From Dimorphilus gyrociliatus (taxonomy: Eukaryota > Animalia > Annelida), in the NCBI GenBank assembly GCA_904063045.1, contig CAJFCJ010000025.1:1-64000 (forward strand): DNA of 64,000 bases, given 5' to 3'. The translations under genes were made by a program, and so were the position numbers. Shown piece after piece: positions 33,101 through 63,462 of the stretch. Every line of letters starts with the position of its first letter. Within the stretch, counting starts at the first letter, position 1. The notes beneath the pieces were generated by a model that worked only from the letters and a program-made list of their open reading frames with translations, searched no databases and was not told the DNA's origin.

Positions 33101-36100
33101 TGAAGAGTCTTCATTATAAATTGACAACCCCGATGATATTTTTCTTGGTTTTAAGCTTTTCAATGGATTAGTCAACTGGAATATTCTCTTAGGAGAAGAA
33201 TTATTAACAGATTCTTTTATATCGATTTCAGTGTTTTCCAGTTCAATTTTCTTCTGCTTCGTCTTTTTAACAATAATTTTTTTAATTCGTTTTAACTCAT
33301 TGTTTACAGGGTCGTCTAAGTCCCCTGTCTGTTTAGGACTCTTTTTTTCAATAGACTCCTTTGCCTTTGTAGCCGATTTTGAAGTAGGAGTCATTCTAAT
33401 AGGACTAGTATTGATAAGGTATTTTTTATTGCCGAGAACGGTGAAACTTTCATTCAGATAGTTCGGTAAAGTTTCTATTTTCAACTCGGTATTATTGTTT
33501 TCATCTTTCTTTGGAGAAGAGGGCTGTTTTGTTAGAAGATTGTCTTTTGATTCTTTGACTCTAGTCCTTACAAATTTGGACTTCTGAGTTCCGTTTTTAG
33601 GAGTTTTTTTCATATTATCATTTTTAGCTAGTTTGTCCTTTTTCCAATTTAATATATTGATTTCAGTAATTCTGTCTGCATTTTCATCAGTATAAAAAGA
33701 TCCAGCATTCTTCGTTGTTCCATTTTCCGAAATTCTTTCGGTCTTCGATTGATATTTTGGTTTATCAATCTTTTTCGAAGGTGAATTGTTTGTTGAATTA
33801 TCTTCAAAAGATTTTTTCATATGAGATTCACATTGAACTTCTTCTTTTGACTTTTTCGAAGGGGATTTCTCAATGGATTTCCTTATCTTAGGTTTTAAAT
33901 TAAACTGTTCGGAGTCATTCTCTTTGGAAGAGACTTTTTGGGGAGAAGTTAATTTCTCTTTTACAGATTTTGAAACCTTCACCCGATTATTTTCATTAAT
34001 ATGAGATTCAAACCGATCTGTTACTACAGTATCTCTTTTTAATTTTCTCACAATTTTGTCCCCGATTTTGTTTTCGCGGTCAGGAACTAGTTTAATTGGT
34101 ACAACTGTCTCATTATTCAGTTGGCAGGCATTTCTAGCACTTACAGTTTTTATAGAAGGTAGAGTTTTTGTTTTCAATAGATAACGATCAGAATAGTTTG
34201 GACCATTAGTATTTTTGATACCATTAACCAGCTTTTTCTGGGCAGTGAATGTTCTTCCTTTTTTTCCATATACCATATTATCAAGGGAGGCGTCACTACT
34301 TTCATCGTCTGATAATACACACTTACGATCATCATTAGTTATATCAGAATCAGATTCGCCTAAAGTAGCATCACTGATGAATGAGAACAGCTTTTCATCA
34401 GCTTGAATCGGAGTACTATGACCATTCGGTAGATATGGAGGAGAGCCAATTTTCGCTAAGGGTTTCTTGACAGATTCAGTACCCTTTGCGATTGACCTGG
34501 AATTACTTGTTTCATCAGGTGAAGTAATGGATATTTCAATTTTGGCAGAATCATCCAATATTTCGTGACAGTTATCGGAATTTTCTTTAGGTTTTTCAGT
34601 ATTAACAAAGCTGGAATGTTTCTTGTTTTCTTCCTCTGTCGTTTCGCAAGTGTAATTATATTTTTTCAGTTTTTCTTTTAAAATGAAATCGAAAGTTGTT
34701 GGATTAGGAATTGGAGCAGCTCGTTGTTTAGGTATGACTCTAACAATTTCGTTCCTTTCTGTCGCAACTTTATCATTTTTCTTTTTTTTAACAGCTTTGA
34801 CTTTGATAGTTTTAGTAGGAGACTTTTTATCTTTTTCAGTTTTAGTCTTGTTAGTTTCGTCTTTGACAGTTTCAGATTTGTCAATTTGACCTTGACCTTT
34901 GTCTGTTTCCGACTTCTCCATTTCTTCTTGGTCACTTTTAGTTTTTTCAGTTTCAATCCGATCAGCTTTGGCCTGTTCAGTTTTAGGTTTAGATGTTTCT
35001 TCATTCGCGTTGCCATTGTTAATCCCATTATTAACATCTTTTGCAACATCATCTTCTTTATTCTCGTCTTTCTTCTCACCAGAAGATAATCTTTTTTCCT
35101 TATTTCTTTTATCTTTAGATAATTGGATAGTACTTTTAGCAGGAGGTAGAAAATAAGGTCTATTTGTTTGGTTCTTTCTTAAAAAGTCTTCAACGTCTAC
35201 TTTGGTATAGTTTGAATTTCTACTACTCGCAGCTTTAGAACGTTCTCTTTGTTTTTGTGATATTCTATCCAACTCCTCTTTAATTTGATAATCAAGATCG
35301 TAGAGGAGTCCCTGATCATCCTTCCTCTTTGTCTTTGTAATAAAATTTTCATTTTCCTCATTTCTTGCAACTTTTCGAAGAAGCTTATTAACTGATTTTG
35401 GCTTTGGAATGACACTTTCATCTTTGGATGCGTCGGAAGATGTTGAATTATTCATTACAGGTAGAATTATATTTTTAATATATTCAGTGTAATCTTCAGC
35501 TAAAAAATTATGAAAGAAATACTGAAATTTCTCAAACGAATGGTAAATATTTCATGAAAATAACCTTCATAATCATCTTCATATATTCCATATCCCGCTT
35601 TGACTAGTTCTTCGCTGGCTTCCAATATTTCTGGATTATCAGAATCTTGTTGGAAGAAAAGTCTAACTTTCTGATTATTAACGTCGGATACGTCAATAAA
35701 ATGTACAAAAAAAGTGTGTTCCTTATCTTTTAAATAAGGCAAAATCGAATTAGAAATTAATGAATAAATATTGAATTTTATTGAAAGTTTACCCAGCATT
35801 CTTTCGAAAGCGTTTTTCGCTGAAAATGTCCAATTTTCTACTTTTCTTCATAAATCAGAAATAATTAGAATTTTTTGGAATAGCCAATAAAGATTCTTAA
35901 ATTTCAACTTACTTTGTTATAAATAGTGAACTCTCTTGATCTCTGGTCAATTCCAGTGGCGCTAATTTATAAAGGCTACAACATCTACTTTGCTGCGGTA
36001 CTTTAAGAAACTTTTTCGGTAATATTCTTAATCTGTTAATAAGTTTCTACCAGGTATACAGTATGAAATAGTTACGTAAATAGGATAGCATACGTTGTTA

Positions 36101-41646: not shown

Positions 41647-44296
41647 ATGACGGACGCTGGCTTCTTTAAGGTTATTTGCATCATGATTCTTCACATGAAG
41701 AGTTTTTTTGATGCTAATTGAGATATCATAGCTGATAATTTTTTGAATTTCTTAAACGTTCATACTTCGCTTTCCGGTTACACTGTGTATAAATAACCTC
41801 TTTTTTTATTAATAAGTATGTTTTTTGGACGATAAAATATCGATTTTAGACTATGAGCTTTGAAAGATATTTCAAAGCATAAATCACAAGTGTAATAGCG
41901 AAAGTTTTATAGCGTCTTTTGGTCGCATTATTCAAATGTATGATAATATGCAAAAATAAGCACCTCACATAAAAATTGTTAAGATCCGTCGTGATTTTAT
42001 TTTAAAATAAGTTTCGTTTTATTTTAGGGAACGAGTGCTGATCAAGACAATCGTTTCTCGGACAAGAAGAAGAAGCTTATGAAGCAAATGAAATTTGCTG
42101 CTAATCTCGAAAAGAAGGTCGATATGGTTCGGGTAAAGTTGGACACTATAAAACCATGGATTACCGATAAAGTTACGGAAATTCTTGGCATGGAGGATGA
42201 CGTAGTTGTTGGTCTAACAATCAATCAATTGGAAGAAAATAGGTATTTATGAAGACATTCTTTCTTTTGTGAAACTATCAAAATATTTTCAGATATCCAG
42301 ATGCAAAAGACATGCAAATAAATCTAACAGGATTTTTAAATGCAAGAAATGCTCGAATATTTATGAGTGAACTGTGGGACCTGATGTTGACAGCTATGGA
42401 GTCTCCGAATGGCATTCCAGAACAGTTTGTTGAGAAAAAGAAGATTGAACTATTGAAAAGGCAAGAGGAAGAAGATAAGATTCGTCAGAGCTTAAAGGCA
42501 AAAGAGGAAGAGATATCTAAAGTATTGTTAACAAATAAAGGTTCTGTTATTAAAGAAGAGAACTTACCGGATTTAATACCCAGTGATATTAAAAAATCGA
42601 CGTCACCGGAAGCTGCAAAGTCTCGCTCTAGATCGAGCTCCAGAAGTAAGTCCCCTAAAAGAAGATCAAGATCAAGGTCAAACAGACGAAAATCCAGATC
42701 AAGGTCCAGGTCTCGCAGAAGACGATCCAGATCGCGCAGACGACGATCTAGATCAAGATCTTTAAGAAGAAGATCTGGTTCTCGATCGTACAGACGTCGA
42801 TCAAGATCGCCTCGGATTAGACGCCGCAGCCCACGTCGCCGTCCCTCACCTAGAGGAAGACCACGCCGCATTAGCCGAAGCTATTCGCCGAAAAGATGGA
42901 GGCGATCAAGAACACCAAGAAGGCAATTTCCACCTCGTCCTCGCAAGAGTGTTAGTCGTTCTTCTTCGTCATCCTCTTCCGCTAGTAAATCTGTCAGAAA
43001 GAGGAGATCTAAGTCTGTATCATCAACATCCAGTAGTAATTCAAATGCGTCTAGAAAGAGAGCACCACCGATGTCTTCCATTCAGGCAAAGAGAAATTAC
43101 CGGGCAAAAAAGAGTAGGAGTACATCTTCTAGTAGCTCAACCAGCAGTGCCTCAATACCACCGCGTAAAAAATCGCCGATCAGAAGACAATCAAGAAGCC
43201 CTAGGCGACGCAGCCCAATAAGAAGAAGATATTCAAGATCTCCGAGAAGGTATTTATTCTGTATTTATTTTACCTAGTAAGCTTTGAATCAAATATGAGA
43301 GTATTGAAAGTTTCTCCAAGAATTTCAGTCTTACGAAAATTGTTTCCTACAGATAAACAGTTCAAAGTTGATTTCTATTTGTCAAAATATTTTTGGGGGA
43401 TAGTGTTTTTCGGATTTCGTAAAACTTAAAAAAAAACTAAATATGCTTGAAAATTATCAACATATATGTTAATAAGAAACAATTTAAAGGTTTTTCAAGT
43501 AGAAACAAGATTAAACTCTTCTGAAGAGAAATAATTAAGTTGTCTTAGGCTGTGTGCTACGTTTTGTAGTATTAATTGCTTTGAATTTTTTTGTAGACGC
43601 TTTTCAAGATCACCTCGTCGAAGATTCAGTCCTCCCAGGAGATCTCCAAGAAGATCGCATCGTACTCCATCACCGTATGCACGGAGATATTCACCGAGAC
43701 GAAGAAGTCCCCATAGGCGATTTTCACCGAGAAGGGAAAATAGACCGTCACCAAGAAGAAGAAGTCCAAGTTCTCCACGTCGGAGATCAAAATCACCAAG
43801 GGGCCGAAACGTATCTCCTAGAAAATCGAGGAGTCCTCATCGTAAATATTCTACTTCGCCTATAAGACCAAAGCAATCAATTTCCCCTAGAAAACGTCCG
43901 AGAAGCAGCTCTTCGGAAGATGAAAAGCCCAGAAGGGTAGAAAAACTATCCCCCAGACGAAGAGGGAGTCCAAGGACATCACTGTCCGAGAGTAAGAAAA
44001 AAAAAAGTATTTCACCAGACCGTCGCATAATAACCCTGGAGAAGAAAACTGATGACGATGGGGATGCGGATGGGGATGCGGAAAAGAAGAAGAAGAAGAA
44101 AAAAGAAAAGAAAGAGAAAAAACATAAGAAGAAAAGCAAGAAGAAAAAGCGTAGTTCAAGCCCGGAAGAGGCTAATCCAAAAAAAGAGCTTGTTGAACTT
44201 GAGAAGGTTCTCAGAGAAAAAGCATTGCAATCGTTGATACGTAAGCAAGAAGGAAAGAAAACACCGACGCTTTATAGCAGTGAGGAGTCCAATTAA
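41647..44296 (+). CDS. SRRM1: SRRM1/SRm160 splicing coactivator (PWI domain + RS region), ~631 aa
   Basis: Exons 41647-41670, 42028-42242, 42293-43249, 43597-44296. MTDAGFFKGTSADQDNRF...KPWITDKVTEILGMEDDVV...QINLTGFL (PWI), long RS/RSP repeats, C-terminal ELEKVLREKALQSL. Confidence 0.96.
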
Positions 44297-44751: not shown

Positions 44752-47700
44752 TTAGTTCCCTCTTGAAAAGTAGGATGGGTCGACATAACCAGAAACCACA
44801 ACTGGTTGACTAGACATACATTCTACAGAATCATCTGCATTGAGCTGAAACAAGTTAGCTGGAACAGAACCAGATAATAGTCCTTCACCTATGAAAATTT
44901 CTCCACTCTTCTCAGAGTTGTTAGGTCCTGGTCCTGAAACATTCAAATTGTCTCTTGGCAAGTTACCATTATGTGAAGGCGGTCTTTTGATATCATTAAA
45001 AAAGGAGACTTCGTTTGAAATATATCCATTTGAATCCTCTAAATGATGAACTGCAATATATTGTGGATATGTTAAATTCGTTTCGTCGGTATTCTTTTCG
45101 CTTTCGTTTCCAGTTTCAGTGGAACCTAATAACAATTCTACGCCTCCATTTGGTAGCTCATTATTCATTCGTACATCAGGATGGTTGGAAGAAACACTAT
45201 GAAGTCGCACTTCTCGTAGATTTCTACTAATAGGAAAATGAACACACTTCTTTAAAACGGCTCTGTAAAATAGAAATAAATATCCATAGTGTATATATAG
45301 TAACAGAATGATGTAATTAAAAATTTTATTACCTTAACTTCCAAAAGAATAAACTAAAAGCTATAGTTAAAGCTATTGAACTTGCAACACCAACAACTAA
45401 AATAGCAACATTCGATCTAATTTCTTCTGTTGGAAGAAGAAGAAAAAGTATTAATTTTTTATAATAGAAATAATGAAATGAACTTGCCTGAAATTTGTCC
45501 TAAACTTTCTTCTGCGGTAGTATTAGTTGACTCGTCGACATGCGAACCAACATTGGCCCACAGCAATATATTGTTTTTAGCCGAAATATTCAAATCATAT
45601 TGAATAGATATACTTTTACCTAACCACTTCTTTTCAAAGTGAACATCTGAACAAAGGAAGAAAATAAAAGCAAATTCTATGAAAGTTACTTATTGTATAA
45701 AATGACAAATTACTACCTCCTATGCAGACATTATCCTTTGAAATACAGAAATATACAATGATGTACATGAAAAATACATCAAGATCGCAAGGAGATTTCC
45801 TTAATTTAACTATAGCTTGAAACATTTCTCCTTTAACAATTGTTGTTATCCTTTCAATATTATCTTCTCCTCTCGTACCTATTCAATTATTATATAATAG
45901 CTTTCTGTTTCAATTAAATATAAGGAATTATAAAAAAACATACCGTGCAATCGTACTTTATTCTTAAAAACACATGGCGAAAAAATCAAACCAGACATAA
46001 AATTTTCTTCCAATTTTAATGCAATAGCTATACTAAAATTCTTTTGAAAATCGTTTAACGATCTACTATCTATTGAATGTTCATAAACATTCTCTCCTCT
46101 TGAAATTTTAAAAATTTCCAAGTTTGTCTGCATAAAAAAAGAAGAGAATAATTAATAAAAGTCAAATCTTTGCTTTGTTTGCTATTACTCACTTTACAGC
46201 CGTTTAAAAAGCTATCTTGATTACGGCATAAAAGTAAAATATATTCTGCAGCATTCAACGCCCATTCTGACCATAAAACTACAAGTCTCAATGGATGACG
46301 GTCAATATAGGCCGTTACCAAAAGATTTTTTGGTTGTTTTTCTATAAAAAAAAGCAATAGTTTCTAGGGCAATTAAACGGCTTGGATTGTAAATCTTACT
46401 GCTCCAATTGACAGGGAGGGCAATTTGGTCTGGTCTCTCCTTTAATGAGGAAAAGTCAAAAGTATTGTCCTTCTTCCATGTACTTTCAACTCTAATTGCA
46501 TACGGTCTTGTTTCACTAATCAATTTCGAATTAAATTGATAGAAAAAAGGCTCTTCTGCAAACATAATATCAGACAAAATTTTTGCAGTATCCTCTTTCA
46601 ATGTGATTTTGTATGCAGTAGTTTTTCCACCTCTTTGTCTTTTGCTTAATGGCTATTTTTGTTTCATTACAACTTAATGAATAATGCATCGTAACGTTAA
46701 AATAAACACTTACATTCCAGATGATAACTACTGAAGGTTTAATACCATTTTGAATATAATAAAAAGTCTCTGGTAAAGCTTCGGGTTCTAAAAATGATAT
46801 TCAAGGAGATTTAATAATAATAAACATTTATTCCAATTTGAAAATTACCTGTTGTATTTGTTGTAAAAGTATAAACAGTGTTTTCACTAGATTTACCATA
46901 TTCCTTTCCATTATCAGTTCCTATCAACGACATAAACACGCTATAATTTGTTGCAGGGGCTAAATTTTCAAATTTGCAGAATCCACATGAATCTTCATTT
47001 CCAGTGATGACGTATACAGTTTTCTTATCCTTAAAAATTTCACATTTATTTAAAATGTGTTTTCTTTAAGCTTTTATTAATAAAATTTAGAAAAATGAGG
47101 AAATCCTATATTATATCCTATATTTTTTGACCTGTAAGATCCTAATCTTCATTCGTCAGATGGCGTGTGTAGCATAAGAAAGCTATGCTTTATAAAATAC
47201 TATTCTGTCATTCTCTCTCTCTCTCTCTAATACGTAATCGCATTCATAAATCATTTTACATTCCGTACTGATAAGTAGAATGTTTGCAGAAAGACGTAAA
47301 CTCTCATTCGCCTTTTCTTTTCATACGCTTTCTTATCTTTTTTATCCATGCCTCTTGTTGGTCCTGTGAGTTGAACTCCCACTACTGTTCCACATTTATT
47401 TTCTACTCAAAATGTCTCTTCTATCAGAGTTCACTCGATCTTTAGTATTACCTCTCCGCATTTTATCCATTTAGGGTAACTTGTACCTCTTCTTCCTTCT
47501 CTTTTCACTATTTTCCACTTTAATAGAGAACCTAACCTTCTACCGTGTCATATCTTACTTAATAGACAACGTGTTCGTCTTTTCTTACTCTGTCTCCTAT
47601 TTCTTCCTTTTCTCATTTTCTGTTTTTTACATCCTTTTTGACATCCTTGCTTAAGGAGAGATGTTTTGTTGTTTTATTTTATACTGATATTATAGTGGTC

Positions 47701-50247
47701 ACCAGCACCAGTAGAATGAGATAAATACATTTACCAAACTGAGCATGGAGAATTTAATCTTTAAACATTCGCTTTATATTGTAAGTAGATGTGGAAGTAA
47801 CAATGGTACGGTGCGCAGGTATATAGAATACTCTATATCATTTTTTACATACATGGTTGTCATTTGCCTAGATATTTTCTAAACATACAAATACACTTTC
47901 TACCAAATTGTTAATAAAAGGAACTTACAAGTACAGCAACTTCGTTAGATGATAATTTGCAGTAGAGATTCAGTTCAACATCGTAATGATGTTTTACTTT
48001 CAAGAAATTTTTTGACGGCTGAACGGGTATTGTTGTCGATGTTCCGCTTATATCTATATTCTTCAAGTGCTCACATGCGGAGATACGTGGCTTTCCAGGT
48101 GTTACTGTTTATTATGAATTATTTAATAGACAATGTGAATGTTTTTATAATTAATTCGGTTTCCTGTGAATATTAAGCAATAGATTTATGGAAATAGGCT
48201 TACAATTGTCTTTTCCTAATTGATAGATATATTCCCTTTTCCACGGGTGTGAAAAAATTATTGTTGAGTTATCCTTATTCATAGAAACATTTATATTCTC
48301 TTTAGACAAACTTTGTAAATTAAGCCATTGTGGAAACTCCATTAAAAATTTAATTTGCAGTTGGGGACTTAATTGTATTTCGAATTTATTGGTTTCCTTG
48401 TTGTAGGGCGTTTCTATTGTACCTATACAGTGTGTCTTATTTGTAGCCCTTCTTCGACAAAGTTGATGAAAAGTTGAATTTGTTCTGCAAGTATTTCACA
48501 TTAAAAGATATTTGAAAAACATTCGATTTCTAATATTATATGTATTTCGATCATTTAATATAAATGTCTGCTGTTGCTATTGTTGCGGATGAAAGACAAA
48601 ATGTTTTTATAGTTATTAATGGGATTTATAGATAATTTCTAATTTTTCCCAAGATAATTCATATACGTGTATAAGCTAAACAAATGACTACTTTTGATAA
48701 AAATAACTATTGTTGTCTTTTTACTGATATTCTGCTCTAGTTTTCGCTCTCGATTCTCCTCCTTCAAAGAATATTGTTAAGCTTTCTTCATTTACAGAAG
48801 AAGAAAGAACGTATTTAACTAAATGTGGTTTTTTACTTCTGATTAACATAATAACTTCCTCAATCACAGTGTGTGTTCTTCTTTCTCGAAATAAGTTTTC
48901 TCCTATTTCAACAATAGAGGCTACGATATAAAATGACATCTTATACTTTTGCCAATAAGTATTGTGTTATATTGTTTGAAGAGAGATCTATTTTTCAAAT
49001 TTCTCTCCAGCAATTCTCATCTATCAAATTTCGATGAAAATAATCTTAGATATAAAATAAACTTAAGATATATTTTAAATGAAAAACAAATTGGTAATTA
49101 AGTATTTTAATTAGCATCTTATCAGATGAGATTTATCATTTTTCTTCTCGTATATCTTTTTCAACAGTATTTTACACTCAGATTGAATGGCATAATGAAA
49201 AATTACATTGAAATATATCAGTACTATATATACTAATATATTGCTGGTTTGTTAATTTATAAATTCATTCAAAATGTGGACAATAAATCACATTCTATAT
49301 ATTCAACTATATAGAAAGGAAGAAAACTGATATTCAATCGTATAGATTGATTATTGTTCTTCTTGAATTTTAATCATAACTTACGATTTGTAAGTGATGC
49401 TAATGTTGACTTGTCGTAATATTGTACTTCCAAAATGACTAGAGTACACCTGATTATCCCATTTCCATTCGCAATTAACGTTGTAATAATCGTTAAGTTC
49501 ACAATATTTTATTATCGGAGGCTCCAGCCAATCTTTAAAAGAGAGAATAACATAAGAAAATTGATATCTTAGTCATGAAAAGAAAATATTACCAAACATA
49601 TGCAGGGAAGCTTGTCGCCAACTCTCAATTGTGGAGCTCAATTCACATCGACATGTATAAAACCTCTGTAAACTACCACTAAATAATTTGCTCCAGGTTA
49701 TGCCAAACGAAAAGCTAAGTCTAAAAATGTCATCACTCAACTTTTTCTCGTCTACTTTCACAAATAATTTTTCATGGCATCTATCACCAATCCCTTCCGA
49801 TTTGTTAAATTTAAAATTTTCTCTGTTCAAGTAACATATGTAGGTTGAATCTTGTCCTATACTAATAAAAACAAAAGGAACATTTTTTAATTGTACATCA
49901 CAATGTACAACTAAAAATCCATCTTCCATAACACTATAATCATTAGAACTTTGACTAATTCGTATAGCTGTTCCAGTTATATGAATATTACCTAATCAAT
50001 GAATAAAAATAAAGAAATCATGAATGAATTGTTGAAACATACTCAAAAAGAAACAAAAACAAAGAGTAAAAAGTGTTGAAAGAAAAGATTACTTACTTAG
50101 ACTCTCACATTGCGTGGCCACTAAAAGTAAGACGAAATAAATTTAATAATTTCTTTACATTTCTTTAAAAATACACAAATTGAACTATTATTAATATTTA
50201 CCGGTAATAAATAGTAAAGCTGCGCCAAAATATTCACTAATTTTCAT
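44752..50247 (-). CDS. gp130/Domeless-like class I cytokine receptor, copy A, ~946 aa
   Basis: 15 phase-compatible exons: 50202-50247, 50097-50120, 49593-49991, 49385-49532, 48204-48484, 47929-48104, 46849-47029, 46714-46787, 46400-46652, 46193-46341, 45944-46127, 45717-45878, 45488-45646 (GC donor), 45333-45426, 44752-45262. Signal peptide MKISEYFGAALLFITVATQCES, putative Ig-like D1, cytokine-receptor Cys pattern (PPIIKYCELNDYYNVNCEW...C-x9-C), FN3 domains, TM VAILVVGVASSIALTIAFSLFFW, Tyr-bearing tail. Family call is by motif recognition, not a database hit. Confidence 0.8.
46940..47568. repeat. Left arm of a 629-bp near-perfect inverted repeat (partner 60098-60726)
   Basis: Manual comparison: the reverse complement matches 60098-60726 with one substitution (cagtacgg vs cagtatgg) and the same (GA)8 length. 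Confidence 0.95.
49960..50126. repeat. 167-bp inverted repeat arm (partner 57420-57586) covering exon 2, intron 2 and the start of exon 3 of receptor A
   Basis: One mismatch by manual comparison (ttttgtttc vs ttttatttc). Confidence 0.9.
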
Positions 50248-52483
50248 AGCGAACTGTCACATTGTCAATCTGAGTTGAAGTAAAAGAAGACGAGGAAGAA
50301 GCAGCAGCAGTAATAAAATAAAAAATAATAAAATTTAATCAAATTATTGAGGTATTAGACAGTTTATATTCAATTTGCAGTAAAAAGACCTTTAAGGATA
50401 ATATATACTCTCTCTCTTTCTATATACTGTATATATGAAAAGACAGAATGTTTTAATGAACTTAATAAACAATAGTTTTGTAGTCTATATTCACATACGC
50501 TACTGGATGGAGTAGGAAAGAACTAATCTAATATTGTTGTGAAGCATATATGAAGGGATATATTTATTGATGTATACTGTATATATGTACTGTATATATA
50601 AAGGTATGAATTTATATGGTAATTCTGTCAATTTTTTATACTTCTGGAAAAAAAAGAGTACTGTTGTGTTACTTTAGACTTAAATAAGCTAATTTGTCAC
50701 ATCCTTTATGAAAAAATATATGGTCTGATTATGCAAAGCCACGTGGGACTGTATTGAAGCGTAAAGAGAAGAATAATGATTTATTTTAGAAAATATAAAC
50801 TGAAAGAAGTAACATACGATTAGAACATAAGTCAAATAACCCAAGTCATGTTTCCTTATCCATTAATAATCAATTGATGATGAAAAGTTAGATATACTGT
50901 ATATTTCATTAACATTAAAATGTTATTTTGTAAAATTGTAAATTAGATGGAATCTAGAAATAGTATACTAATTTAAATAGGCGTCTTAAACTAAATGTTG
51001 AAACAGTACGTTAATATTTCCATAGAATAGAACAGAAACTTATTATGTTTTATAAACCAATATTCAATTACGAAAGTGTATATTTTAATTATTTTTTGTT
51101 TTTTGTCCTTTATAATTTATATTAAGAAAAAAAAGAAAGAGAAGGAAATAAAAACTAATCATTTATAAACCTTTCATTTTCAATTACCATAGTAAAAATA
51201 TATAACCTCATTCTTTCTTACTTTTTTTCATTATAACTTAAATGAAGATTATTAAAATCTCTTTCTTTTACTTTCTTTGAAACTCAACTTGATTCCTCAT
51301 AATACTTTATATCACGATTGATAGATTATTAATTAATATCTTTTCTTGGTTTCCGGAAGTATCTTTAATACAATTAAAGACATTGTAAGTCTATAGTTAC
51401 TGAAGTGAATTACATAAAGTCAAGCCCATGAAAATATTGTTTATTAGAGTTCAATTTAGTGGGTTTCTGCATAGTATTGTCCTAAAAGTATTCATATAAA
51501 TTTCTGCCACCTACACGATCACCTACACAATTTGCAACCTATATATAAATACAATTTATAATGATAGTATCATCTGCAATATTGTATAGTTTTACTTGTA
51601 TTCTTCTTCCATATGTGTTTTATAGTATAGTAAATACAACAATTATTCTATTGATCTTAATCTTGCTTCTCCTTACTTTACCTTCATATCTCTTCCAATT
51701 AAAGGGAAAAGATAAATTAATAATAAATGTCGTTTATTCAAACTTGTTAAATTTCTAATTACTTTTTAAGAGTTTAGCTTCTTTACTTTTCTATTAAAAT
51801 TCATATAAGCATAAATAATGAGGGAGAAATATTAACTAAATGTCTAGGCAATTTCTAATTTTTCTTTCAATTATTACCATTTCAAAAGTTATAAAGGTTG
51901 CTTTTCTTTTAAAATCCTTATCTTTTAGTATTAATTTGGACGTGATCATGCGTTATAGTCATTCCTACATGTCTCTCTTTCCCTCTCTCTTTCTTCCTTT
52001 CTTTCATATTTAATATGATAGAATAATGCATTGTAATATTTTTCGTAAAACCTAAACTAATTGAATTTCATTATAATGAGAAGAAAAATTCTAAAGCTTT
52101 ATGTAGACATTATTTTGTCAATAGAATAAAATATTCGAATTACAAATTATTTTTTAAACATTTAGATTCAATCAATGAATAGGAATGTTAAATTCAATAA
52201 GTAGACATGACACAATTTCATTTAAAGTCCTTGCTAAAGTAACTAGAGTGTCGTATTTAAAAAACATGCTTACAATAAAAAGAAAACAAACTAACTTATG
52301 CTTGTTACTTGTATATGGACGATATTATAATAGAAATATCGTTACAGGTCGTTGTATAAATGTCTGTTGATAATTTTAATGTTGTATCCAGAAAATGTCA
52401 CTTAAATATTTAGTTAAATAATCTTGATTCACAGGTTTTTTGTCAGGCGAGTCTTCTCTCTTCTTTGCTCTCTCTTTTCGATA

Positions 52484-52564
52484 TGGGCTGGTGACCTGAT
52501 GTTGATCTTACGGAAGTTCCGGTAAATATTGAGGACAAAAGCTGGTTCTCTCTTTTGGCGGCAA
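52484..52564 (-). promoter_or_regulatory. Duplicated upstream element / candidate promoter of receptor A
   Basis: The reverse complement is highly similar to 54730-54809 (ttgccgccaaa.gagagaaccag...ttaccggaacttccg.aagatcaacatcaggtcaccagccca). Looser homology continues over ~52230-52430 vs ~54850-55030. Confidence 0.6.
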
Positions 52565-53791
52565 AACAAATTTGTTCGATGTTATATACGAAATAGGTTA
52601 TAAGAGATTCTAATTACATTAAGTATAATATACAATATAATGGATACTAATAGTGTTACAATATTTTTACGATAATAGTAAATATTTAAGGTAAGTTGTA
52701 TGGGGGCATTGTTATATATATATATCTACACGCCGATACCTTGATAATTTATCAGTAAATGAATCTTTTTACACTTGTTGAGACATTAATTGTTTGAGAT
52801 TTAATAATCTCGTCTTTATCGAATTTATGATACTTCATGGATAGGCTATCTTATTCAATTGTTAACATAATTAAAGAAAACATATATTCAAAATGTTTAA
52901 GGGCAAAAACGAGAGGCAAAGTTGTGATTACTAACTAAAACGAGTAGCAACAACAAATATACAGGTAGTGTATAGAGCAACAAGTTTTGAAAAACACTAT
53001 TAATATTTCTCGAACACAGGTAACAAATGGGTGTTTTAGGTAACTAAACAAAATTCTCAAGTCTTTGTATCTAGGTAATCAATTTCCACACGTCATACAT
53101 GAACTATTTAGAATAGCCCTGTACCTGTGGCTTTTAGTCACATGTATGCTCTAAATAATAAAAAAACAAAAGAAAAAACTTTTGCTCATCAACTTGTATT
53201 GAATTTATTTAAAAATATTATAATAATTTCTAAAAGAATTACTTAATTGCCTATTAATCAAATTTTAGTTGTCAGAGATAACTTATTTATGAAAGGAATC
53301 CATAACTCATCAAACAAAAAAAAAAACATTTCATAATTAAAAGTTTTTTGTTCCCGTATCAAATTCTTAACAGATATTCATGAACAGTTTTTTATTATTA
53401 TACTATTTTGAATTGTATATAGTTGATATTCTCTCAATAGATATCTTCTCAGCAAAGAAATGAAAGTACCAGTGAAATATTTAAATATATTTAATAGAAT
53501 TATTATTTTCGTTAACTAATCATACTTTTATGCCAAAGAAGGTATAACCTTTACCAAGTTAAGTAATTTTACCTTGACTCATTAAATATATAAAATATAT
53601 AGCTGTATATATACATATATATCCAAAAGGGAATGTTTATAACAATATAGCACAAACACAAAAATATCTTTGTTCGTCTCTATTATAATTTTTATTTTAT
53701 AGCTTTTTTGTAGGCTTAATAAAGCAATAAATTCTCAAAGCTTTACAACTGAATGAAATTTTCGATAAAAAAGTTATTTTTTTATAAAATC

Positions 53792-53823
<32 letters not shown>

Positions 53824-54729
53824 TAATATACACAGGCTTTAATTACTCAGTTTTTCCAAATATAATTAAATACTTAGGCGAAAAAGATGAGAAACAAAGA
53901 AGATAATATCACCGTTTTTGCTGTTGATTGTCGATAAGAAGTAGTTGTTATAAACAAATATTTTTACATAAAAATGGTTAAAAAAAGCATAAATTAAAGT
54001 TAAATATAATGAAAGGAGCTTTAATAGTTGAAGAAAAAGTATTAAAAACATAAAAATAAGTCAGTTGTTAAGATGACGATTATAAGATCGTGTCGAAATC
54101 AAATTTGTTTGATAAGAGATTGTAGTTTTGTATAATACTTCTAAAGTCTGTTTTTTTGTTCATTCAATGATTGCTATTTTGAGTTTTTCTTATCTTAAAA
54201 AGTGTATGTTCAAGGTCATTCCTAAAAATTTTATTCTATTAGAAACACACGAAAATATGCTTAGATACTTTCAGTTTATCAAAATGATTATTTTATATGT
54301 ATATATAATATATATATATATAAATTTATATATATATATGCTTATTAATAGTAATTAGTACAATAGAGGCCAAAAAACGCATTAATAATTACTGATAGAG
54401 CAATAATACATTTAAAAAAAATAACAATTCAATTACACATTGCTACATGCTTCTCTAACAAGTTTGCTAATAAAAAAAGTAACATTTGCGTTCAACTGAT
54501 AATAAAATATATATAAGAAATTTTCTGTTACAAATACTTGAACAACACTACACTTCGAATACTATATATGTAAACAATTAAGCTTAATAGAATTAAAGAA
54601 TTATGATTTTTTAATAAAATTAAATCTCAAATTGATAAAATTGATTATAAATATTAATCAATGACTTATTTCATTTATAGTTATCGTATTAACACGTTTA
54701 AATGCTGACAAAACACTGAATAATCTCAG

Positions 54730-54809
54730 TTGCCGCCAAAGAGAGAACCAGTTCTTGTCCTCATTTTTTACCGGAACTTCCGCAAGATCAACATCAGGTC
54801 ACCAGCCCA
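54730..54809 (+). promoter_or_regulatory. Duplicated upstream element / candidate promoter of receptor B
   Basis: Inverted counterpart of 52484-52564; contains TTACCGGAA (GAS-like/ETS) and CTTCCG. Confidence 0.6.
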
Positions 54810-55404
54810 GAGCCAAGGCGAGAGATAAATTCTGCCTTTAAATCTATAAATCAAGACTATTTAAGTGAACATTCAATTGACAATTTCTGGATGTTGGATT
54901 AAATAGATCATTATACAGTGATTTATAACGATATTTCTACCGTAATATCGTCCATGTATAAGTATCAAGCACAAGTTTGTTTTCTTTTTACTATATAGCA
55001 TGTATTTAAATAAAAGATACTCTAGATGCTTCGACGTAACCTATTTAGGCAAAAGATTATTGAATTGAGCACTCTTTTTCATTGATCGATAGAAGTTTTA
55101 GACACAATTAGTAGTTAAAAACATATTCATGTGTTTACTTGCGAAAAATGAAAATGAGATATAAATATTGTATATATAGTATATAAATTTATATATACTG
55201 TATATATATATATATATCTATTAATAGTAAGTGAGCGAATGAGATGTATAATGTTCTTAAAGAAACATATGTAACTAATCTATTATTACTGGTAAGACAC
55301 TTTACAGTTGAAAATCTTTACAGTTGAAATTTTAATACTGTCCTGATGAAAATATTTGAATAATTTGAAAGGCTGTATCATAGTATAAAAGATAGTTGAA
55401 GAAT

Positions 55405-55485
55405 GAAAGACTGAGACAGACAGATATACACAGTGGTAGTTGGATAGACAGACAGACTCATACACATACACAGACAGGCAGACAT
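55405..55485. repeat. Degenerate GACA/CA simple repeat upstream of the receptor B CDS
   Basis: gactgagacagacag...gatagacagacagactcatacacatacacagacaggcagaca. Confidence 0.65.
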
Positions 55486-57229
55486 TTCGATATAAGCATA
55501 ACACGTGGTGTGCTGTCATCTTCAATTATTGGACAAGATGAAAAAGAAGATTTTAGAATGATAATAGCAAATAGACAATTTGAAATCATCTAGACAAATA
55601 GATTCGCTGAATATTTTTCTCATTACTTATTCTTATAATTAATTCTAGAAAAAAGAAGTAGGAGGGTTAATAATAATAAATAATAATTTCTATAGTTTTC
55701 TTTATTTATTCTACTCTAACAAAATGGAGAATATCTCTGTTAATACGATAAGTTTTTATATACTAATTTATAAATGACCTACAAGCCCTTTTCTGAAGTC
55801 AAAGTTATAGGAGATTGTATTGAACAACTCAGAGAAAAGAACGATTTTGTCCCCTATATGAAAATGAAAAGAAATTGTATAATATACATATTCTAATATA
55901 TAGAGATATTCGAAAGAAAAGTTGTGAAAAAGAATATACAATAGGTAACCTATCAGGCAAGGTTGGAATTATTAGAATAATTTACTTTTTATATTTTTGA
56001 TACTATAAAAAGGTATGTTATTCTCTAACATAGAGATAACTTCTCATTGTTTTCCTTTTCATATTCTCTTGATACTCTTTAACGTTAGATTAGCTACAGC
56101 TAATTAAACTCTGTCGGATAACAGATTGTAGGTTAAAAACTATTGAATATTACGCAACTATTGATTGTGACTAGACTTGACAAAAAATACAAAAACTATT
56201 TCGAGAAAAGTAGAATTTATCATCAAATAGTAATAAAAATTGATCGAAATATAAATTATTAAAGGTGCACTGACCGCTTACGGTTTCAAATGTATAGATG
56301 GAAACTTTATAGATGATTCTCCATTGAGAAGCACTTAACACATAAAAAGAAAATAAAATTCAAACTAATGTAACGATTCTTACCTAGTGATATTTCAATG
56401 TTAAACTTTATAATTGCTTTCTTTCATCGTGATATAAGATTAAGTTTGTGAAGAAAGGTCAACGAATATTCAGCGCTTACTGTAACACTATTGATAGAGA
56501 TATTTTCTCTTAATTTAACTTTCTTAATTATATTATTTTAGTGTTTTGTTAATTATATTTATATTTTTTTCTTGATCTTCTTGCTCAACTAACTAACAAT
56601 TTAATGAAATGATAGATAGAGTATGTATATATAAGATGCTTATATAAGATGCTTATCCAGCGTTCTTTTTTTTCTGTCTACACCTAAACTTGGCCTAGTT
56701 GGCCTATTTTTTCCGTTCCGCCTCATTGATAAAGGCGATATACTGTAATGGTGTCATTGACCCTTTTCAACAATAGTTGCTTTTTTTTACCAGCACGTCT
56801 GTTCAGTAGTTGACGTCTGTAACAATTCTATAAAGGCTAAAAAAAAACCTTCGTCCATATAAGTATACTTCATTGTTAAAAGTGTAAAGAAAAATCTGTT
56901 AGGTGTTTCTAATATGATATTTTCATGTATTCATTTTTCAATTTAATAGAAACTCTTTCTGAGCAAAACAGTTAAATATAGGTAGCATCTATATATATAC
57001 AAACGTTTGTATCTACATCATACGGAGAATATTTATATTCTTTCATTTTTAAATGTGTAAAATTGAATGTTTATTACATCCATTCACACAAACACACATT
57101 CTCATATATGTATATTAATATTGCTAATGCTTAGTTTGCTTTTTTTGTTTCTATTAAATAATTTTGGATATTATTCCATTTCTACTACTTTTTCTTCTTC
57201 TTTCAGGAATGACAATGTGACAGTTCACT

Positions 57230-60200
57230 ATGAAAATTAGTGAATATTTTGGCGCAGCTTTACTATTTATTACTGGTAAATGTTAATAATAGTTCAAATT
57301 TTATTAATCTAAAGAAATTAAAAAGTTATACCTTCTATATTTTTTAAATATACATTTTATAATAAATTTCTTGATTCTATTTATAAGTAAAGATTTAATT
57401 ATCTTCTTTTTTGTCTTGCTTTTAGTGGCCACGCAATGTGAGAGTCTAAGTAAGTAATCTTTTCTTTCAACACTTTTTACTCTTTGTTTTTATTTCTTTT
57501 TGAGTATGTTTCAACAATTCATTCATGATTTCTTTATTTTTATTCATTGATTAGGTAATATTCATATAACTGGAACAGCTATACGATATAGTCCAAGTTC
57601 TAATGACTATGTAGCTTTGGAAGATGGATTTTTAGTTGTGCATTGCGAAGAAAAATCAAACAGCATCACTGATGTTTTTGTCAAAGTCAAGTTGCAATCT
57701 AATTTTTTATGTTATGTGAATGAAAAATACCCATTGTCCAAAAGTGTTTATGATGAATGTAATAATATTATGAAAATACGTGTTGAAGAACATCCGGAAA
57801 GTGGTGGATATAGAAATCTCAGCTTTGCCTTTCGTACCCCTTGGCTGAATTATCAGCCTCGGAAAGATTGTAGACATTGCAGGGTATGTTACTGTGCGAA
57901 ACCTTCCTCAAATGATTCTAGAGGGGTAACTCTATCTCCTCTTAGTAAGTATTTTAAAAATAACAATATTAAATTGTAGATTAACCGTCAAGTGTAGAAA
58001 ATTACATTTAAATGTGTTAATTGCTTTCAGGTTGGCCAAAACCCGCAATTATAAAAAAATGCTATTTATACGATTATTCTGATATTAATTGTGAATGGGT
58101 TTTTGCTCACAAGCAGGCCAAGGGGACACTATTGCCGAAATTCAACACTGTTTTGTCTTTTAAAGAGTAAGTAAAGTCTTAATTGTAAAAAGCCACTTTA
58201 TTTTAATTCAGCAGATGTCTTCTAATTGTGCCACTCGGTACCAGGCTTTTGTTTACAGATCTTTCTCTGGTACCTTTTTTTTGTAGTAGTGCAATACTAG
58301 TATTCTTTGGTTTAGAGAAAGATTTTATTATTAGGTCTTGTTTTATTTTTTTACCGACTTTTAAACATCCCACTTCGAAGATTAATAAAATCTATTATAG
58401 TTTCGGATTATCCAGCAGCTTGAATAATAATATATCTAACTTATTTTTATATTCATAACCTATAAGATAAATTTATTCGGGCACCTTAATGAATGGTTAT
58501 AATCTTTATAAGATATATATTTGTTTTCTGTATTTGTTGAAAAGTTCTCATACAAAATAACCTTTTTTCAGAATACTAATAAGAAACGAGAATTAGGCGA
58601 TTTATTTACCTTTTTCTTTTATAATAGCAAGTTGTATATAAACTTAAAATAGAATACTTTTTGAAGTTTACAGCATTCTTATTTTACTGACCTTGAAAAC
58701 TGTTTATTCGCAACGAAAATACGGTGAAGGAAAGATTCTATATTTGTAAAAGGGCTGTTTGATCTTACAGACAGACCAAAAAGATGGCAGCGATATATGT
58801 CAGTCCATTTATAAAGCTCTTATCGAGAAGCTAATTAGAACAGTAGAAATAGAACACAATTTTGCGATGTTATAATATTTTATTTCTAAAAATTTAAACA
58901 TCTTTATCATTCTTTTTTTTGCAGCAAATACTCTGGAGTATATGAGCTATGTACGACAAATATCGCGCTAAACAATTGCACAACTGACATAGGAAACTTC
59001 GCTCAAAGTTTTGCTCAAAAAGACTATCGATTAATGATACGTGCTGAATTGCATATAAAGTTTGAAATGAATTTCCCTAAAAATTTTGACCTGAGCTCTC
59101 TAAACAAAAATAATGTCAATCTTTCCATGGATAAAGAAAATTCTGCAGTAACATTCGCCTATCCTTTTGAAGACAAATACGTTTACAAATTAGGAACAAA
59201 CAAATGTAAGGAGATTTTTTTTTATATACTTTCTTTTCTTTGTTAAGTTGAAAGGAATATTTTCTAGTTGGCAAATTTTTTGCAATTTAAACATATAATC
59301 TATATTAATTGACTTATGTACATATAACTATTTATTTTCTACCATTTCATTACAAAATACTATCATCTATATTTATATTTTCAATACTTATTAAATCGAT
59401 ATTAAACAGTAATTCCTGGAAAACCCATTGTTTATGAATGTGACAACTTGAAGGATCCAATTGTCAATAGCACATCAATGATAGTACCTGTTCAACCATC
59501 AAAAAATTTTTTGAAAGTGAAGCACCATTATGATGTTGAACTGAATCTCTACTGCAAATTATCAACCAACGAAGTGGCTGAATCTGTAAGTTCATTTAAT
59601 ACTACTATATTATAGAAAAATAAGGAAACGATAGTCTCTAAGTAAATGGATAAAAGTGTATAACATATATAGAGTATATAATTTTATGAATATATTATTG
59701 TAATGTATGGAAAGTATAGAGAATCTTTGCATTTATATAGCTTACATGTAGGCAGGGCAGGAAAGACAGCTAATTGATTAGGGAATCTGAATGACAGATT
59801 ACTGGAAAGTATGTTCGTATATTTATAAGTATCTGGGTAAATGACAACGATTTAAGTAAAAATAAAGACTGATATAACATATTGTCTACCTGGACGCCGT
59901 ACTCTTATTACTTTCTACATCTACATACAATATACAACGAATATTTATAGATCAAATTCTACAGGTTAAATTTGATAAAGGTGTTGATCTCACACAACTA
60001 ACATTAGACAAGCACAGTATAATTATGTTATATTATGAAAATATTCATGTTCAATTGATACAAAAACGAGAGACAGGGTCAGAAAAGACGAATTCACTGT
60101 CTATTAAGTAAGATATGACACGGTAGAAGGTTAGGTTCTCTATTAAAGTGGAAAATAGTGAAAAGAGAAGGAAGAAGAGGTACAAGTTACCCTAAATGGA

Positions 60201-63200
60201 TAAAATGCGGAGAGGTAATACTAAAGATCGAGTGAACTCTGATAGAAGAGACATTTTGAGTAGAAAATAAATGTGGAACAGTAGTGGGAGTTCAACTCAC
60301 AGGACCAACAAGAGGCATGGATAAAAAAGATAAGAAAGCGTATGAAAAGAAAAGGCGAATGAGAGTTTACGTCTTTCTGCAAACATTCTACTTATCAGTA
60401 TGGAATGTAAAATGATTTATGAATGCGATTACGTATTAGAGAGAGAGAGAGAGAATGACAGAATAGTATTTTATAAAGCATAGCTTTCTTATGCTACACA
60501 CGCCATCTGACGAATGAAGATTAGGATCTTACAGGTCAAAAAATATAGGATATAATATAGGATTTCCTCATTTTTCTAAATTTTATTAATAAAAGCTTAA
60601 AGAAAACACATTTTAAATAAATGTGAAATTTTTAAGGATAAGAAAACTGTATACGTCATCACTGGAAATGAAGATTCATGTGGATTCTGCAAATTTGAAA
60701 ATTTAGCCCCTGCAACAAATTATAGCTTATTCATGTCGTTAATTAGGGTTGATAACGAAAAGGAATATGGTAAATCTAGTGAAAACACTGTTTATACTTT
60801 TATAACGAACACAACAGGTAATTTTTAAATTTGGATAAATGTTTATTATTATTAAATCTCCTTGAATATCATTTTTAGAACCCGAAGCTTTACCAGAGAC
60901 TTTTTATTATATTCAAAATGGTATTAAACCTTCCGTATCTGTCATCTGGAATGTAAGTATTATTATGATATATTGTATAACTTTTAATACAAGAGAAAAA
61001 ACAGTCCTTAAGCAGGAGACTAGCTGGTGGAAAAACTGTAGCATACAAAATTACAGAGAAACACTTAACGACAATTCTTAATGCTGATATCTCATGTTCG
61101 TTTGAGGACCTATATTCTATATGTAAATTTATAAGAAAGGGGCTCGACAGCAGTATTAGAGTTGAAAGTACATGGAAGAGTGATCTTAGTTTTAACTTTT
61201 CCTTATTGAGAGATGTACCAGATCAAATTAATTTACCTGCAAATTGGGCAGGTTAGTACTCTACTAGTTTTAGTTTTAATAAAAAAAAATAGTTTCTTCG
61301 TAATGAATTTAAAGAGAAAAACAACTTATATTTGTTTAATCTATTTTACAGAAAGGCAGCCGGAAAATATTTTGCTAACAGCCTACGTTGATCGTTCAAT
61401 GAATAATAATAAAGTTATAATTGTATGGTCACATTGGGTGATGAATGCTACAGAATACATTTTAATTTTGTGCCGAAATCAGGACAGTTTTCTTAAAGGT
61501 TGCACAGTAAGTTGAAAATAAAATAAATCATTAATTTTTATAAAGGGTAATGTTAAAATTACTCTGTTTTTCTTTTATAACAATATAGAATAACATGGAA
61601 AGTTTTAAGATTCCTCGAAATGAATCTTTATTTGAATATTCAATAAAAATGGATTTAACGGAAACTGTTATGAATAATTTTAGTGTTGGTGTTTCGGTAA
61701 AGTTTAAAGATGATTTTATGTCTGGTTTGCTTTTCTCTCCTTGTGTGTTTAAGCAGAAAAATTTACATTTTAATGGTATAATAAATACTTTTAATTATAT
61801 TGAGGTTTTTTCTATAACTTCTTAATTAATTAGGTATGAAAGGAGATAATGCTATTGAAAATATAAAGACTAAAATTAGAGGGAAGATTTTGCATTCTAT
61901 AGTAAACTTGAAGAAAAATCCATGCGAACTTGATATATTCTTTACTTATGTTGTAATTTATTTTTGTGTTTCCAAGAACGATGTTTGCATAGAAGGTAAT
62001 CTTTTTTCTTCTTTTTATCTTTATCCTCATTTATATATATATATATATAAATGTATATATAATTAATCGTTAATATTTCTATTGCATAACTCTTAATTAT
62101 ATCATTCTTTATTTCATTTCATTTTTTAAAGAATGCCAAAGGAAAAAATTTTGGATTAAGAATAAGAGCACTATGACATTTGATTTAGGCATTTCCTCCT
62201 CCAAGGAAGTTTTATTATGGGGTAAAGTTGGATCTCACCTAGGTGAATCAACCAATTCAAGTAATTACCAGAAAACAGCGAACTTTTCAGGTAAACTTTC
62301 CAACTGATATATATTATATACAATGTATGTTAAACATAAAAAAGGAGCTAGAACAATTAATTACAAATACTCTGCCTCAGAAACAAAAATAGACAAACAT
62401 AATGGTAGTTTTCTACAAGAATTTGCGCAATTTTTTGTAAGAAAGTAGTGCCATCTGTAAGTCGAATATATGAATTTAATGTATGATTTTCTTTGAAGGA
62501 AATTGTATAGTCTAGTAGCTGCTGATAGGATACTATACAACTTACGTAAGAGAATTCTGTATTTTTTTAATACCTTATATAAATTTTAGTATGTAAAAAT
62601 TATTCCCAATAGATTAACGATTCATTTGCAATAAAGAGAATATTTTATATAGTTTTCAGAATATAGCAGTTTTGTTTTGTTTCTATTCTGTTATATAGTT
62701 TATTATAATGTAAAATGTTGAATGGCAATTTTTTATTACTACAACTATTATTTGTATTGTTATAATAATTATATTGTTCTTTCCTCAGCCGAAAACTCAT
62801 CAAAGGCAAATCTAATTGTTCTCGGTATAGTGGGCTCATTGATACTGGTAATTATTTTCATAGTCTTAGCATGGAAGTTAAGGTAAAAGTAATTTTATTA
62901 TAATAAGCAATTTATTTATTCTCCATCTTTTCATTAAAAACTAATATATAGAGCCGCCTTTTGGAAATTTGTACATTTCCCGATAGAAACGGATTTTCCA
63001 GTTATTTTGAATGAGGTATCTTCGAGCCATCCGAATGGTGATGAAGCGGCGAACGCTGAGCAACCTAACCAAGGAGCTACTCCGCTATTACGGAATGATG
63101 AATCTGTAACTGATGGAGACAAGAATTCGCAGGGTAGTGGTTCGGAGACTCCGATTTATGTTGAGATAAAACATAACAAAGGATCGAATGGTTATTTAAC

Positions 63201-63462
63201 AAATGAACCTGAGAAATTTGAAGATGTTAGAGAAACAGCCAACGGCTACTTGCCAAGAGACAATGTACACCTTTTAGGTCCTTGTAATCCAAATAGGACT
63301 AATGAGGTAACTTTAGTGAAAGGAGCCACTGCTTCTCCTATTTCTACTGATACAATGCAGCTCAATGTAGAGAATGGTTCTACGAACGGTCAATCTAGTC
63401 AATTGGGTGGGAGTTCGGGATCCTACGTTGACCCATCCGTGTTATTTTCAAAAGGAAAATAA
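57230..63462 (+). CDS. gp130/Domeless-like class I cytokine receptor, copy B, ~940 aa
   Basis: 15 phase-compatible exons: 57230-57275, 57426-57449, 57555-57944, 58031-58166, 58925-59205, 59410-59585, 60637-60817, 60879-60952, 61005-61251, 61352-61506, 61589-61775, 61834-61995, 62132-62290, 62789-62882, 62952-63462 (2,823 nt). PKPAIIKKCYLYDYSDINCEW...C-x8-C; FN3 LAPATNYSL; PEALPETFYY...SVSVIW (cf. gp130 D4 PSKAPSFWY...VQLVW); TM LIVLGIVGSLILVIIFIVLAW; tail ending SYVDPSVLFSKGK. Confidence 0.82.
60098..60726. repeat. Right arm of the 629-bp near-perfect inverted repeat (partner 46940-47568)
   Basis: 539 nt of intron 6 plus 90 nt of exon 7 of receptor B; one mismatch to the receptor A copy. Confidence 0.95.

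Follow-up and report, generated by a model that had tools for sequence, protein, structure and literature searches.

A head-to-head pair of putative receptors of gp130-like design in the annelid Dimorphilus gyrociliatus

JAK/STAT signalling begins at receptors of the gp130/Domeless type, which have been well characterised in vertebrates and insects and are also on record from molluscs. We found no description of such receptors from annelids in the literature, and no paper linking the small marine annelid Dimorphilus gyrociliatus to cytokine receptors. This animal can be kept in laboratory culture, and its genome is small (74 Mb) and intron-rich. On contig CAJFCJ010000025.1 (assembly GCA_904063045.1) two adjacent genes, here called A and B, lie head to head, and their predicted products have the general appearance of tall cytokine receptors. 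The locus raises the question of whether the pair belongs to this receptor family, and of what the two copies might do. We analysed positions 1 to 64,000 of the contig, an AT-rich stretch of about 30% G+C that we refer to as the window. We conclude that A and B are probably lineage-restricted paralogous single-pass receptors constructed on the tall class I plan of gp130, LIFR and Domeless.

The locus is an inverted duplication of one multi-exon gene. Comparison by tblastx and blastn of the reverse strand of 44-53.5 kb with 53.5-64 kb reveals collinear, frame-specific similarity in inverted orientation. We curated the exons by hand against splice sites, reading frames and phases. An automatic exon chain built from A/B conservation scores was discarded, as it was over-split into 19-28 exons and scored conserved introns as coding. 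Gene A (minus strand, 50247-44752; 946 amino acids (aa)) has 15 coding exons at 50247-50202, 50120-50097, 49991-49593, 49532-49385, 48484-48204, 48104-47929, 47029-46849, 46787-46714, 46652-46400, 46341-46193, 46127-45944, 45878-45717, 45646-45488, 45426-45333 and 45262-44752. Gene B (plus strand, 57230-63462; 940 aa) also has 15, at 57230-57275, 57426-57449, 57555-57944, 58031-58166, 58925-59205, 59410-59585, 60637-60817, 60879-60952, 61005-61251, 61352-61506, 61589-61775, 61834-61995, 62132-62290, 62789-62882 and 62952-63462. The phases are the same in both genes (0,1,1,1,2,1,0,1,0,1,0,1,1,1,2), and the exon lengths, given as A/B from exon 1 to exon 15, are 46/46, 24/24, 399/390, 148/136, 281/281, 176/176, 181/181, 74/74, 253/247, 149/155, 184/187, 162/162, 159/159, 94/94 and 511/511 nucleotides (nt). 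The initial annotation of this locus had described two divergently oriented 15-exon genes with shared intron phases, and the curated models bear this out; its count of eleven coding exons of equal length falls to ten of the 15 pairs.

All introns of both genes are of the GT-AG class apart from A intron 13, which is GC-AG. The donor of that intron (45488/45487, minus strand) reads CAG/GCAAGT, the public model of A uses the identical site, and B has GT at this place. Our model of A agrees in every letter with the public protein DgyrCDS13360 (P0005). The public counterpart of B, DgyrCDS13362 (P0001), follows our model over residues 1-739, then reads through the exon-13 donor into intron 13 and reaches a stop, giving a protein of 744 aa. 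This read-through (62290-62310) produces the terminus ...ANFSGKLSN and removes the transmembrane segment and the tail. The public annotation names neither gene, because no profile recognises them.

Both proteins share one layout. As read from the sequence, exons 1-2 encode a signal peptide, and exon 3 (A 49991-49593; B 57555-57944) encodes a single-exon immunoglobulin (Ig)-like domain with a VVHC...YxCxC pattern. Exons 4-7 (A 49532-46849; B 58031-60817) encode a four-Cys cytokine-binding-like module, with its first domain in exons 4 and 5 and its second in exons 6 and 7, and exons 8-13 encode three further FN3-like domains of two exons each. The FN3 nature of these last three (domains 4-6) was assigned solely from an ESM Atlas search and strand motifs. 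Hydropathy and a motif scan place the transmembrane segment in exon 14 (A 45426-45333, residues 752-774; B residues 748-768) and the tail in exon 15 (A 45262-44752), exons 14 and 15 of B together spanning 62789-63462. The tail is 172 aa long in each protein, with five tyrosines in A and four in B. By exons, the Ig-like domain takes one, the four-Cys module four (phases 1-2-1-0-1), the later domains two each, and the transmembrane segment and the tail one each. Vertebrate class I receptors may share this 1-2-1-0-1 phase series. The order of parts, from the Ig-like domain through the four-Cys module and three FN3-like domains to the transmembrane segment and a non-catalytic tyrosine-bearing tail, is that of a tall class I receptor. 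This layout had been proposed for the locus, with a tail of about 170 aa, and can be read in both curated proteins; the claim that both copies keep full tails, unlike Drosophila latran, also stands.

The gene models are supported by RNA. The evidence comes from contigs of two public runs, X1 and X2, placed on positions 57200-63199. At least 13 of the 14 introns of B are seen as exact GT..AG joints in X2 contigs, among them 62290>62789 and 62882>62952, both of which are missing from the public model of B; the fourteenth, 61995>62132, is present in that model. B is thus a membrane protein of full length, of which the public model represents a truncated version. The joint between 62290 and 62789 is covered to a depth of about 357 in X2, compared with a depth of 0 inside intron 13 (62400-62599), so the membrane form of B dominates in that run. 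Letters specific to A also occur in X2, as loose contig ends at B positions 57645, 61179 and 61753 that run from near-identical parts of B into A exon 3, A exon 9 and the A exon 11/12 junction, respectively; the last of these spans the junction. Both genes are therefore intact, transcribed and spliced as modelled, and these contigs give no sign of the unexpressed or mis-spliced copy that the initial annotation had named as the outcome to watch for. X1 is a metatranscriptome labelled 'coral metagenome'. Over 60637-63199 its contigs are 99-100% identical to parts of gene B together with an A-type exon 7, so a Dimorphilus-like worm seems to be present in the coral sample; one variant X1 end after exon 13 is unlike the sequence of the window.

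What connects these proteins to cytokine receptors beyond the order of their parts is, in the first place, the four-Cys module. The signature of the cytokine-receptor homology domain (CHD) is C-x(9-10)-C-x-W-x(26-32)-C-x(10-15)-C, followed in the next domain by WSXWS (PMC1963337; PMC7444064). The first four-Cys domain of A and B opens with W-x-x-P and continues with C-x9-C-x-W and then a second Cys pair, the whole motif being C-x9-C-x-W-x35-C-x9-C in A (C167-C225) and C-x9-C-x-W-x31-C-x8-C in B (C164-C217). A relaxed four-Cys pattern matches both proteins and only 10-24 of 20,000 shuffles (0.05-0.12%). The second domain of the module carries an FN3-type strand, L-x-P-x-T-x-Y-x-V (LAPATNYSxFMSL), followed by E-Y-G-K-S-S-E. 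Just inside the membrane of class I receptors lies Box1, a PXP motif often of the form phi-phi-P-x-phi-P-x-P, with Box2 after it (PMC7444064). A conserved hydrophobic-proline segment occupies the corresponding place here: the juxtamembrane sequence is KKCVHFPISRNL in A, KFVHFPIETDFP in B and KFINFPTVNDFP in L003, a relative from another species that is described below. The two tails have in common the motifs K-x-V-H-F-P-I, which lies next to the membrane in both, Y-[IV]-x-[VI], SNGY[IL][ST]NE, LPRDN and YVDPS.

Language-model and structural comparisons point the same way. In a search of the ESM Atlas by features with the whole of protein A, the best neighbour scored 0.97 with 209 of 256 features shared, and the ten best named neighbours all carry the same Pfam family or clan as the best. 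The rows listed for A are LIFR, gp130, LEPR, IL-23R and 'cytokine receptor' clusters, together with one molluscan cluster that has fn3 only; neighbours with the layout of A scored 0.95-0.97. The Atlas structure model of whole A is nearest to OSMR, IL12RB2, gp130, G-CSFR (GCSFR) and LEPR. When residues 157-422 of this model, which cover the four-Cys module, were compared, nine of ten structural rows were class I modules, including OSMR, IL2RB, IL-27B, LEPR, IL6R and IL13RA1, with TM scores of 0.50-0.60 over 187-199 residues. The truncated form of B, which is an ectodomain, has the soluble receptor-like proteins IL-27B, IL-12B (IL-12p40) and CRLF1 as its nearest Atlas neighbours, at 0.90.

Set against this evidence is a series of results that weigh on the other side. 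The strict CHD spacing fails in both A and B by 1-3 residues, with the order of the motif and C-x-W kept. WSXWS is absent from both proteins, with YGKSS in its place. The growth hormone receptor GHR likewise departs from WSXWS (PMC1963337); YGKSS therefore lowers the case for membership without excluding class I receptors. The motif scan found no PXP Box1 in either tail, the juxtamembrane segment having a single proline in A and FPxxxDFP in B; nor did the scan find YxxQ in the tail of A or B. Neither single exons nor whole proteins nor single domains matched any Pfam family, even with the threshold relaxed to E<=10, the families without a match including fn3, IL6Ra-bind, Lep_receptor_Ig, LIFR_D4 and EpoR_lig-bind. 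Searches of PDB sequences with phmmer and with profiles returned no receptor, only chance matches such as Cas6b and NudI, and hhalign detected no similarity among the six putative domains (probabilities below 2%). The Atlas model of A is itself weak (predicted local distance difference test (pLDDT) 0.56), one of the ten structures listed for residues 157-422 belongs to an ordinary Ig protein, and the language-model neighbours may in part reflect overall layout rather than descent. AlphaFold2 gave unusable models, with pLDDT 38 for the Ig-like domain plus four-Cys module (7 alignment rows) and 33 for domains 4-6 (2 rows). Foldseek against the PDB with the former returned nothing below E 0.03, and the weak Ig-type and EpoR rows that it listed were discounted accordingly.

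Several of these results would equally be expected if the pair were other Ig/FN3 surface proteins, active in adhesion or pattern recognition, that resemble cytokine receptors in layout only and work without JAK/STAT. The missing hidden Markov model (HMM) and PDB sequence matches and the missing WSXWS, PXP Box1 and YxxQ all suit this alternative, as does the observation that the four-Cys module, searched by features alone, is nearest to generic fn3 clusters (0.91, with a low 145-149 features shared). The genome paper for D. gyrociliatus also reports few expanded families, most of them locally duplicated immune genes (PMC7854359). However, generic Ig/FN3 proteins would not readily explain why the ten best named Atlas matches of A fall in one family or clan, the listed rows being tall class I clusters with the single molluscan exception, or why cytokine-binding modules make up nine of the ten structural matches listed for residues 157-422. 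The C-x9-C-x-W...C-x8-9-C motif, moreover, is at the right place and rare by chance, and the tails are long and non-catalytic and carry conserved tyrosine motifs. We regard this alternative, the main competitor of the cytokine-receptor reading, as unlikely.

Thus, the proposal that these are receptors of the gp130/Domeless type holds as far as layout, Atlas features and Atlas structure are concerned, and does not hold for HMM matches, WSXWS, Box1 or YxxQ. Two of the checks that the initial annotation had suggested did not settle the matter: HMM searches matched no family, neither cytokine receptors nor rival FN3 proteins, and the AlphaFold/Foldseek route ended with the unusable models. A and B are gp130-like in design, and descent from the class I cytokine-receptor family is probable; we do not file them as members, because WSXWS, a PXP Box1 and HMM membership were each tested and not found. 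If they are true cytokine receptors, this family can retain its layout, cysteines and split gene structure even when its sequences have diverged past the reach of HMMs, and BLAST-based surveys that call it absent from a phylum may have missed it.

Comparison with known systems brings out the same mixture of likeness and difference. With gp130 (IL6ST) and LIFR, OSMR, LEPR, G-CSFR and IL12RB2, the pair shares the order of parts and a long tyrosine-bearing tail without a kinase, and this group supplies its nearest neighbours in language-model features and in the Atlas structure model alike. From a gp130-like gene of Ciona through to vertebrates the CHD keeps a complex, split structure, whereas that of Drosophila dome is a single exon (PMC1963337); the module of A and B, split over four exons, fits the former pattern and differs from dome. 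The annelid proteins differ from the gp130/LIFR group in having no HMM-detectable similarity, in having YGKSS for WSXWS and Cys spacings just out of range, in lacking a PXP Box1 and a YxxQ STAT3-type site, and in having a cytoplasmic part encoded by one exon.

Drosophila offers a parallel in gene arrangement. There, dome and lat form a tandem with a shared orientation, and the short Lat protein, which does not signal, forms inactive heteromers with Dome (PMC2914635; PMC4751595). The initial annotation had pointed to this neighbouring, tail-truncated antagonist paralogue (latran/eye transformer, CG14225), in agreement with the published description (PMC2914635). Both systems are invertebrate gp130-like plans with a locally duplicated paralogue, and Dome/Lat heteromers (PMC2914635) provide a precedent for A:B pairing; A and B, however, are head to head with two full tails, in contrast to the tandem dome and lat with a short Lat. 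Molluscan 'IL6R'/Dome-like receptors combine Ig, cytokine-binding and FN3 domains and co-occur with JAK and STAT, according to the part of a 2026 survey used here (PMC13203501). As described there, they are recognisable by BLAST and SMART, whereas the annelid pair is not. The survey has annelids among its taxa, and the same part of it reports an annelid JAK (from Owenia) and no annelid receptor (PMC13203501).

The two genes have almost no detectable relatives outside each other. Among 1.84 billion representative proteins, an exon-3 profile picked out the 744-aa protein DgyrCDS13362 and, as further relatives, only an A-like protein (P0002) and a B-like protein (P0003). A word-indexed search of 5.8 billion proteins with B, the A ectodomain and the B tail as queries found only A, B and one tail fragment. 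A and B are therefore each other's only detectable full-length relatives in that collection, which argues that the duplication is lineage-specific and independent of dome/lat, as the initial annotation had supposed for an invertebrate pair.

Partial relatives from other species nevertheless place the A/B split in time. Locus L001 (run SRR23372229) covers exons 3-6 with the same exon breaks and resembles A (43-52%) more than B. P0003 (ERR14224705) has a B-like exon 3. L003 (protein P0006; SRR23372229) covers exons 9-15, with a transmembrane segment and tail that are B-like (44% versus 27%), B-type tail motifs that are kept, and middle exons that are equidistant from A and B. As L001 is A-like, and P0003 and L003 are B-like, the A/B split of tips and tails is older than those species. 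At positions 652-795 of L001 the four module cysteines are kept, with C-D-L for C-x-W, so the Trp is not invariant in the lineage. L001 and L003, which come from one run, may be two genes or a single gene with an A-type tip and a B-type tail.

The divergence between A and B is unevenly distributed. The proteins are 49% identical overall, with 100% identity in exons 1-2, 92% in exons 7-8, 68% in exon 6 and 34-58% in all others. The lowest values (34-39%) are in the Ig-like exon 3 and the first four-Cys domain (exons 4-5). Within exon 3, the first 35 or so codons are near-identical and the remainder is 39% identical. Overall, the proportion of non-synonymous differences (pN) is 0.31 and that of synonymous differences (pS) 0.57, the synonymous sites being saturated outside the similar patches; in every exon for which both could be estimated, the non-synonymous value is the lower. 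Both copies are therefore under constraint.

Superimposed on this pattern are two gene-conversion patches, one at the signal peptide and one around exons 7-8. The latter corresponds to an 892-nt inverted repeat of 97% identity, with 29 differences in total. One arm (46705-47596) comprises the 3' part of intron 6, exon 7, intron 7 and exon 8 of gene A, and the other (60070-60961) lies in gene B. The sequence occurs in the window only as these two arms, which rules out a dispersed repeat or mobile element as its source and argues for gene conversion; part of the exon 7-8 conversion appears to be very recent. Within the arms, a 629-nt stretch (46940-47568 against 60098-60726), mostly intron 6 with the first 90 nt of exon 7, has a single mismatch, against 14 A/B differences across the second half of exon 7, so the intron is better kept than the adjoining exon. 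The 629-nt stretch may owe its identity to conversion in the very recent past or, alternatively, to constraint on an intronic element. The second tract is older and runs from exon 1 into the beginning of exon 3. In A it covers coding exon 1, part of intron 1, exon 2, intron 2 and the start of exon 3 (49867-50289), and repeat detection and blastn align it with 57188-57679 in B at 84-90% identity. With its diverged tips and homogenised hinge, the locus clearly illustrates how gene conversion can act within an inverted gene pair. As the arms are inverted, recombination within the 629 nt would lead to inversion of a 12.5-kb segment, with exons 1-6 exchanged between the genes and the frame preserved. 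A single gene with an A-type tip and a B-type tail, one of the two readings of L001 and L003 given above, is what such an inversion would produce.

Upstream of their coding regions the two genes also share sequence. The transcript of gene A includes at least one more 5' exon, non-coding, which the initial annotation lacked. Upstream of A coding exon 1, an X2 contig carries 30 letters found at 52323-52294 on the minus strand, where a GT follows; A therefore has a non-coding 5' exon there, which together with its promoter-proximal block spans 52299-52564 (minus strand), the 3' end of the exon (donor) being at 52299. On the opposite strand, blastn and a MAFFT alignment identify a counterpart of the A block (330 nt) at 54730-55031 (plus strand; 74% identity), a putative non-coding 5' exon and promoter-proximal region of gene B. 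The blocks stand back to back with about 2.2 kb between them, and the two genes probably start back to back at this distance. Both blocks contain the exact 16-mer TTTACCGGAACTTCCG (52511-52526, minus; 54767-54782, plus), which may be a common promoter element of the pair. Within it, the palindrome CCGGAACTTCCG has the form of two ETS-type GGAA cores in inverted orientation.

What the two copies do can be approached from the distribution of change between them. The ligand-contact parts have diverged, and each gene retains its tail. Most probably, therefore, A and B respond to different ligands or act as the two chains of one receptor; neither looks like a decoy. On the preferred reading of A and B as class I-type receptors, a secreted helical ligand would bind the elbow of the four-Cys module and the Ig-like tip, and would dimerise two chains as A:A, B:B or A:B. 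A JAK-type kinase seated on the juxtamembrane K-x-V-H-F-P-I would then phosphorylate tail tyrosines (Y-[IV]-x-[VI], YVDPS), and the phosphotyrosines would recruit SH2 proteins such as STATs. We infer the fold, the family and every ligand-binding and signalling step of this scheme, and the A:B heterodimer, the two ligands and the coupling to JAK/STAT are conjectural.

One copy could instead mainly modulate the other, either as a soluble B produced by exon-13 read-through or as a full chain that damps mixed dimers in the manner of latran. The read-through end of the public B model would give such a soluble form, the truncated B has soluble receptor-like proteins as its nearest neighbours, the inactive Lat/Dome heteromers of Drosophila supply a precedent (PMC2914635), and one X1 contig lies entirely within B intron 13 (62514-62754). 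That contig, however, may be DNA or pre-mRNA, the X2 depths at the 62290/62789 joint and inside intron 13 speak for the membrane form, and both tails are of full length with common juxtamembrane and tyrosine motifs. We consider a mainly modulatory copy improbable.

A bolder version of the two-chain reading would make A and B a single obligate receptor, its chains produced in fixed proportion from the back-to-back promoters, with conversion keeping the hinge (exons 7-8) and the signal peptide alike while the tips diverge. Recombination in the 629-nt repeat would then invert the 12.5 kb and swap the tips (exons 1-6), yielding four chains from two genes, as a population polymorphism or somatically. 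This is a speculative scheme to which we give little credence. The idea that either copy, or both, is a duplicate in decay or a product of faulty assembly or annotation can be set aside almost entirely, since the truncation of the public B model and the possibility in principle that inverted repeats stem from mis-assembly are outweighed by frames that are open over 15 exons with matching phases, an excess of synonymous over non-synonymous change and spliced RNA for both genes, which rule out pseudogenes, and by the 49% identity between the copies, which excludes an assembly duplicate.

The other genes recognised in the window are unrelated to the receptor pair. They comprise open reading frames (ORFs) for an MFS transporter (19058-20293, plus strand), a bZIP protein (26380-26877, plus) and a PWI-domain protein (42312-43277, plus), all three unrelated to cytokine signalling, and for a Tudor-domain protein of 2,388 aa (28289-35455, minus). 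The Tudor ORF is uninterrupted, an unusually long single exon for an intron-rich genome.

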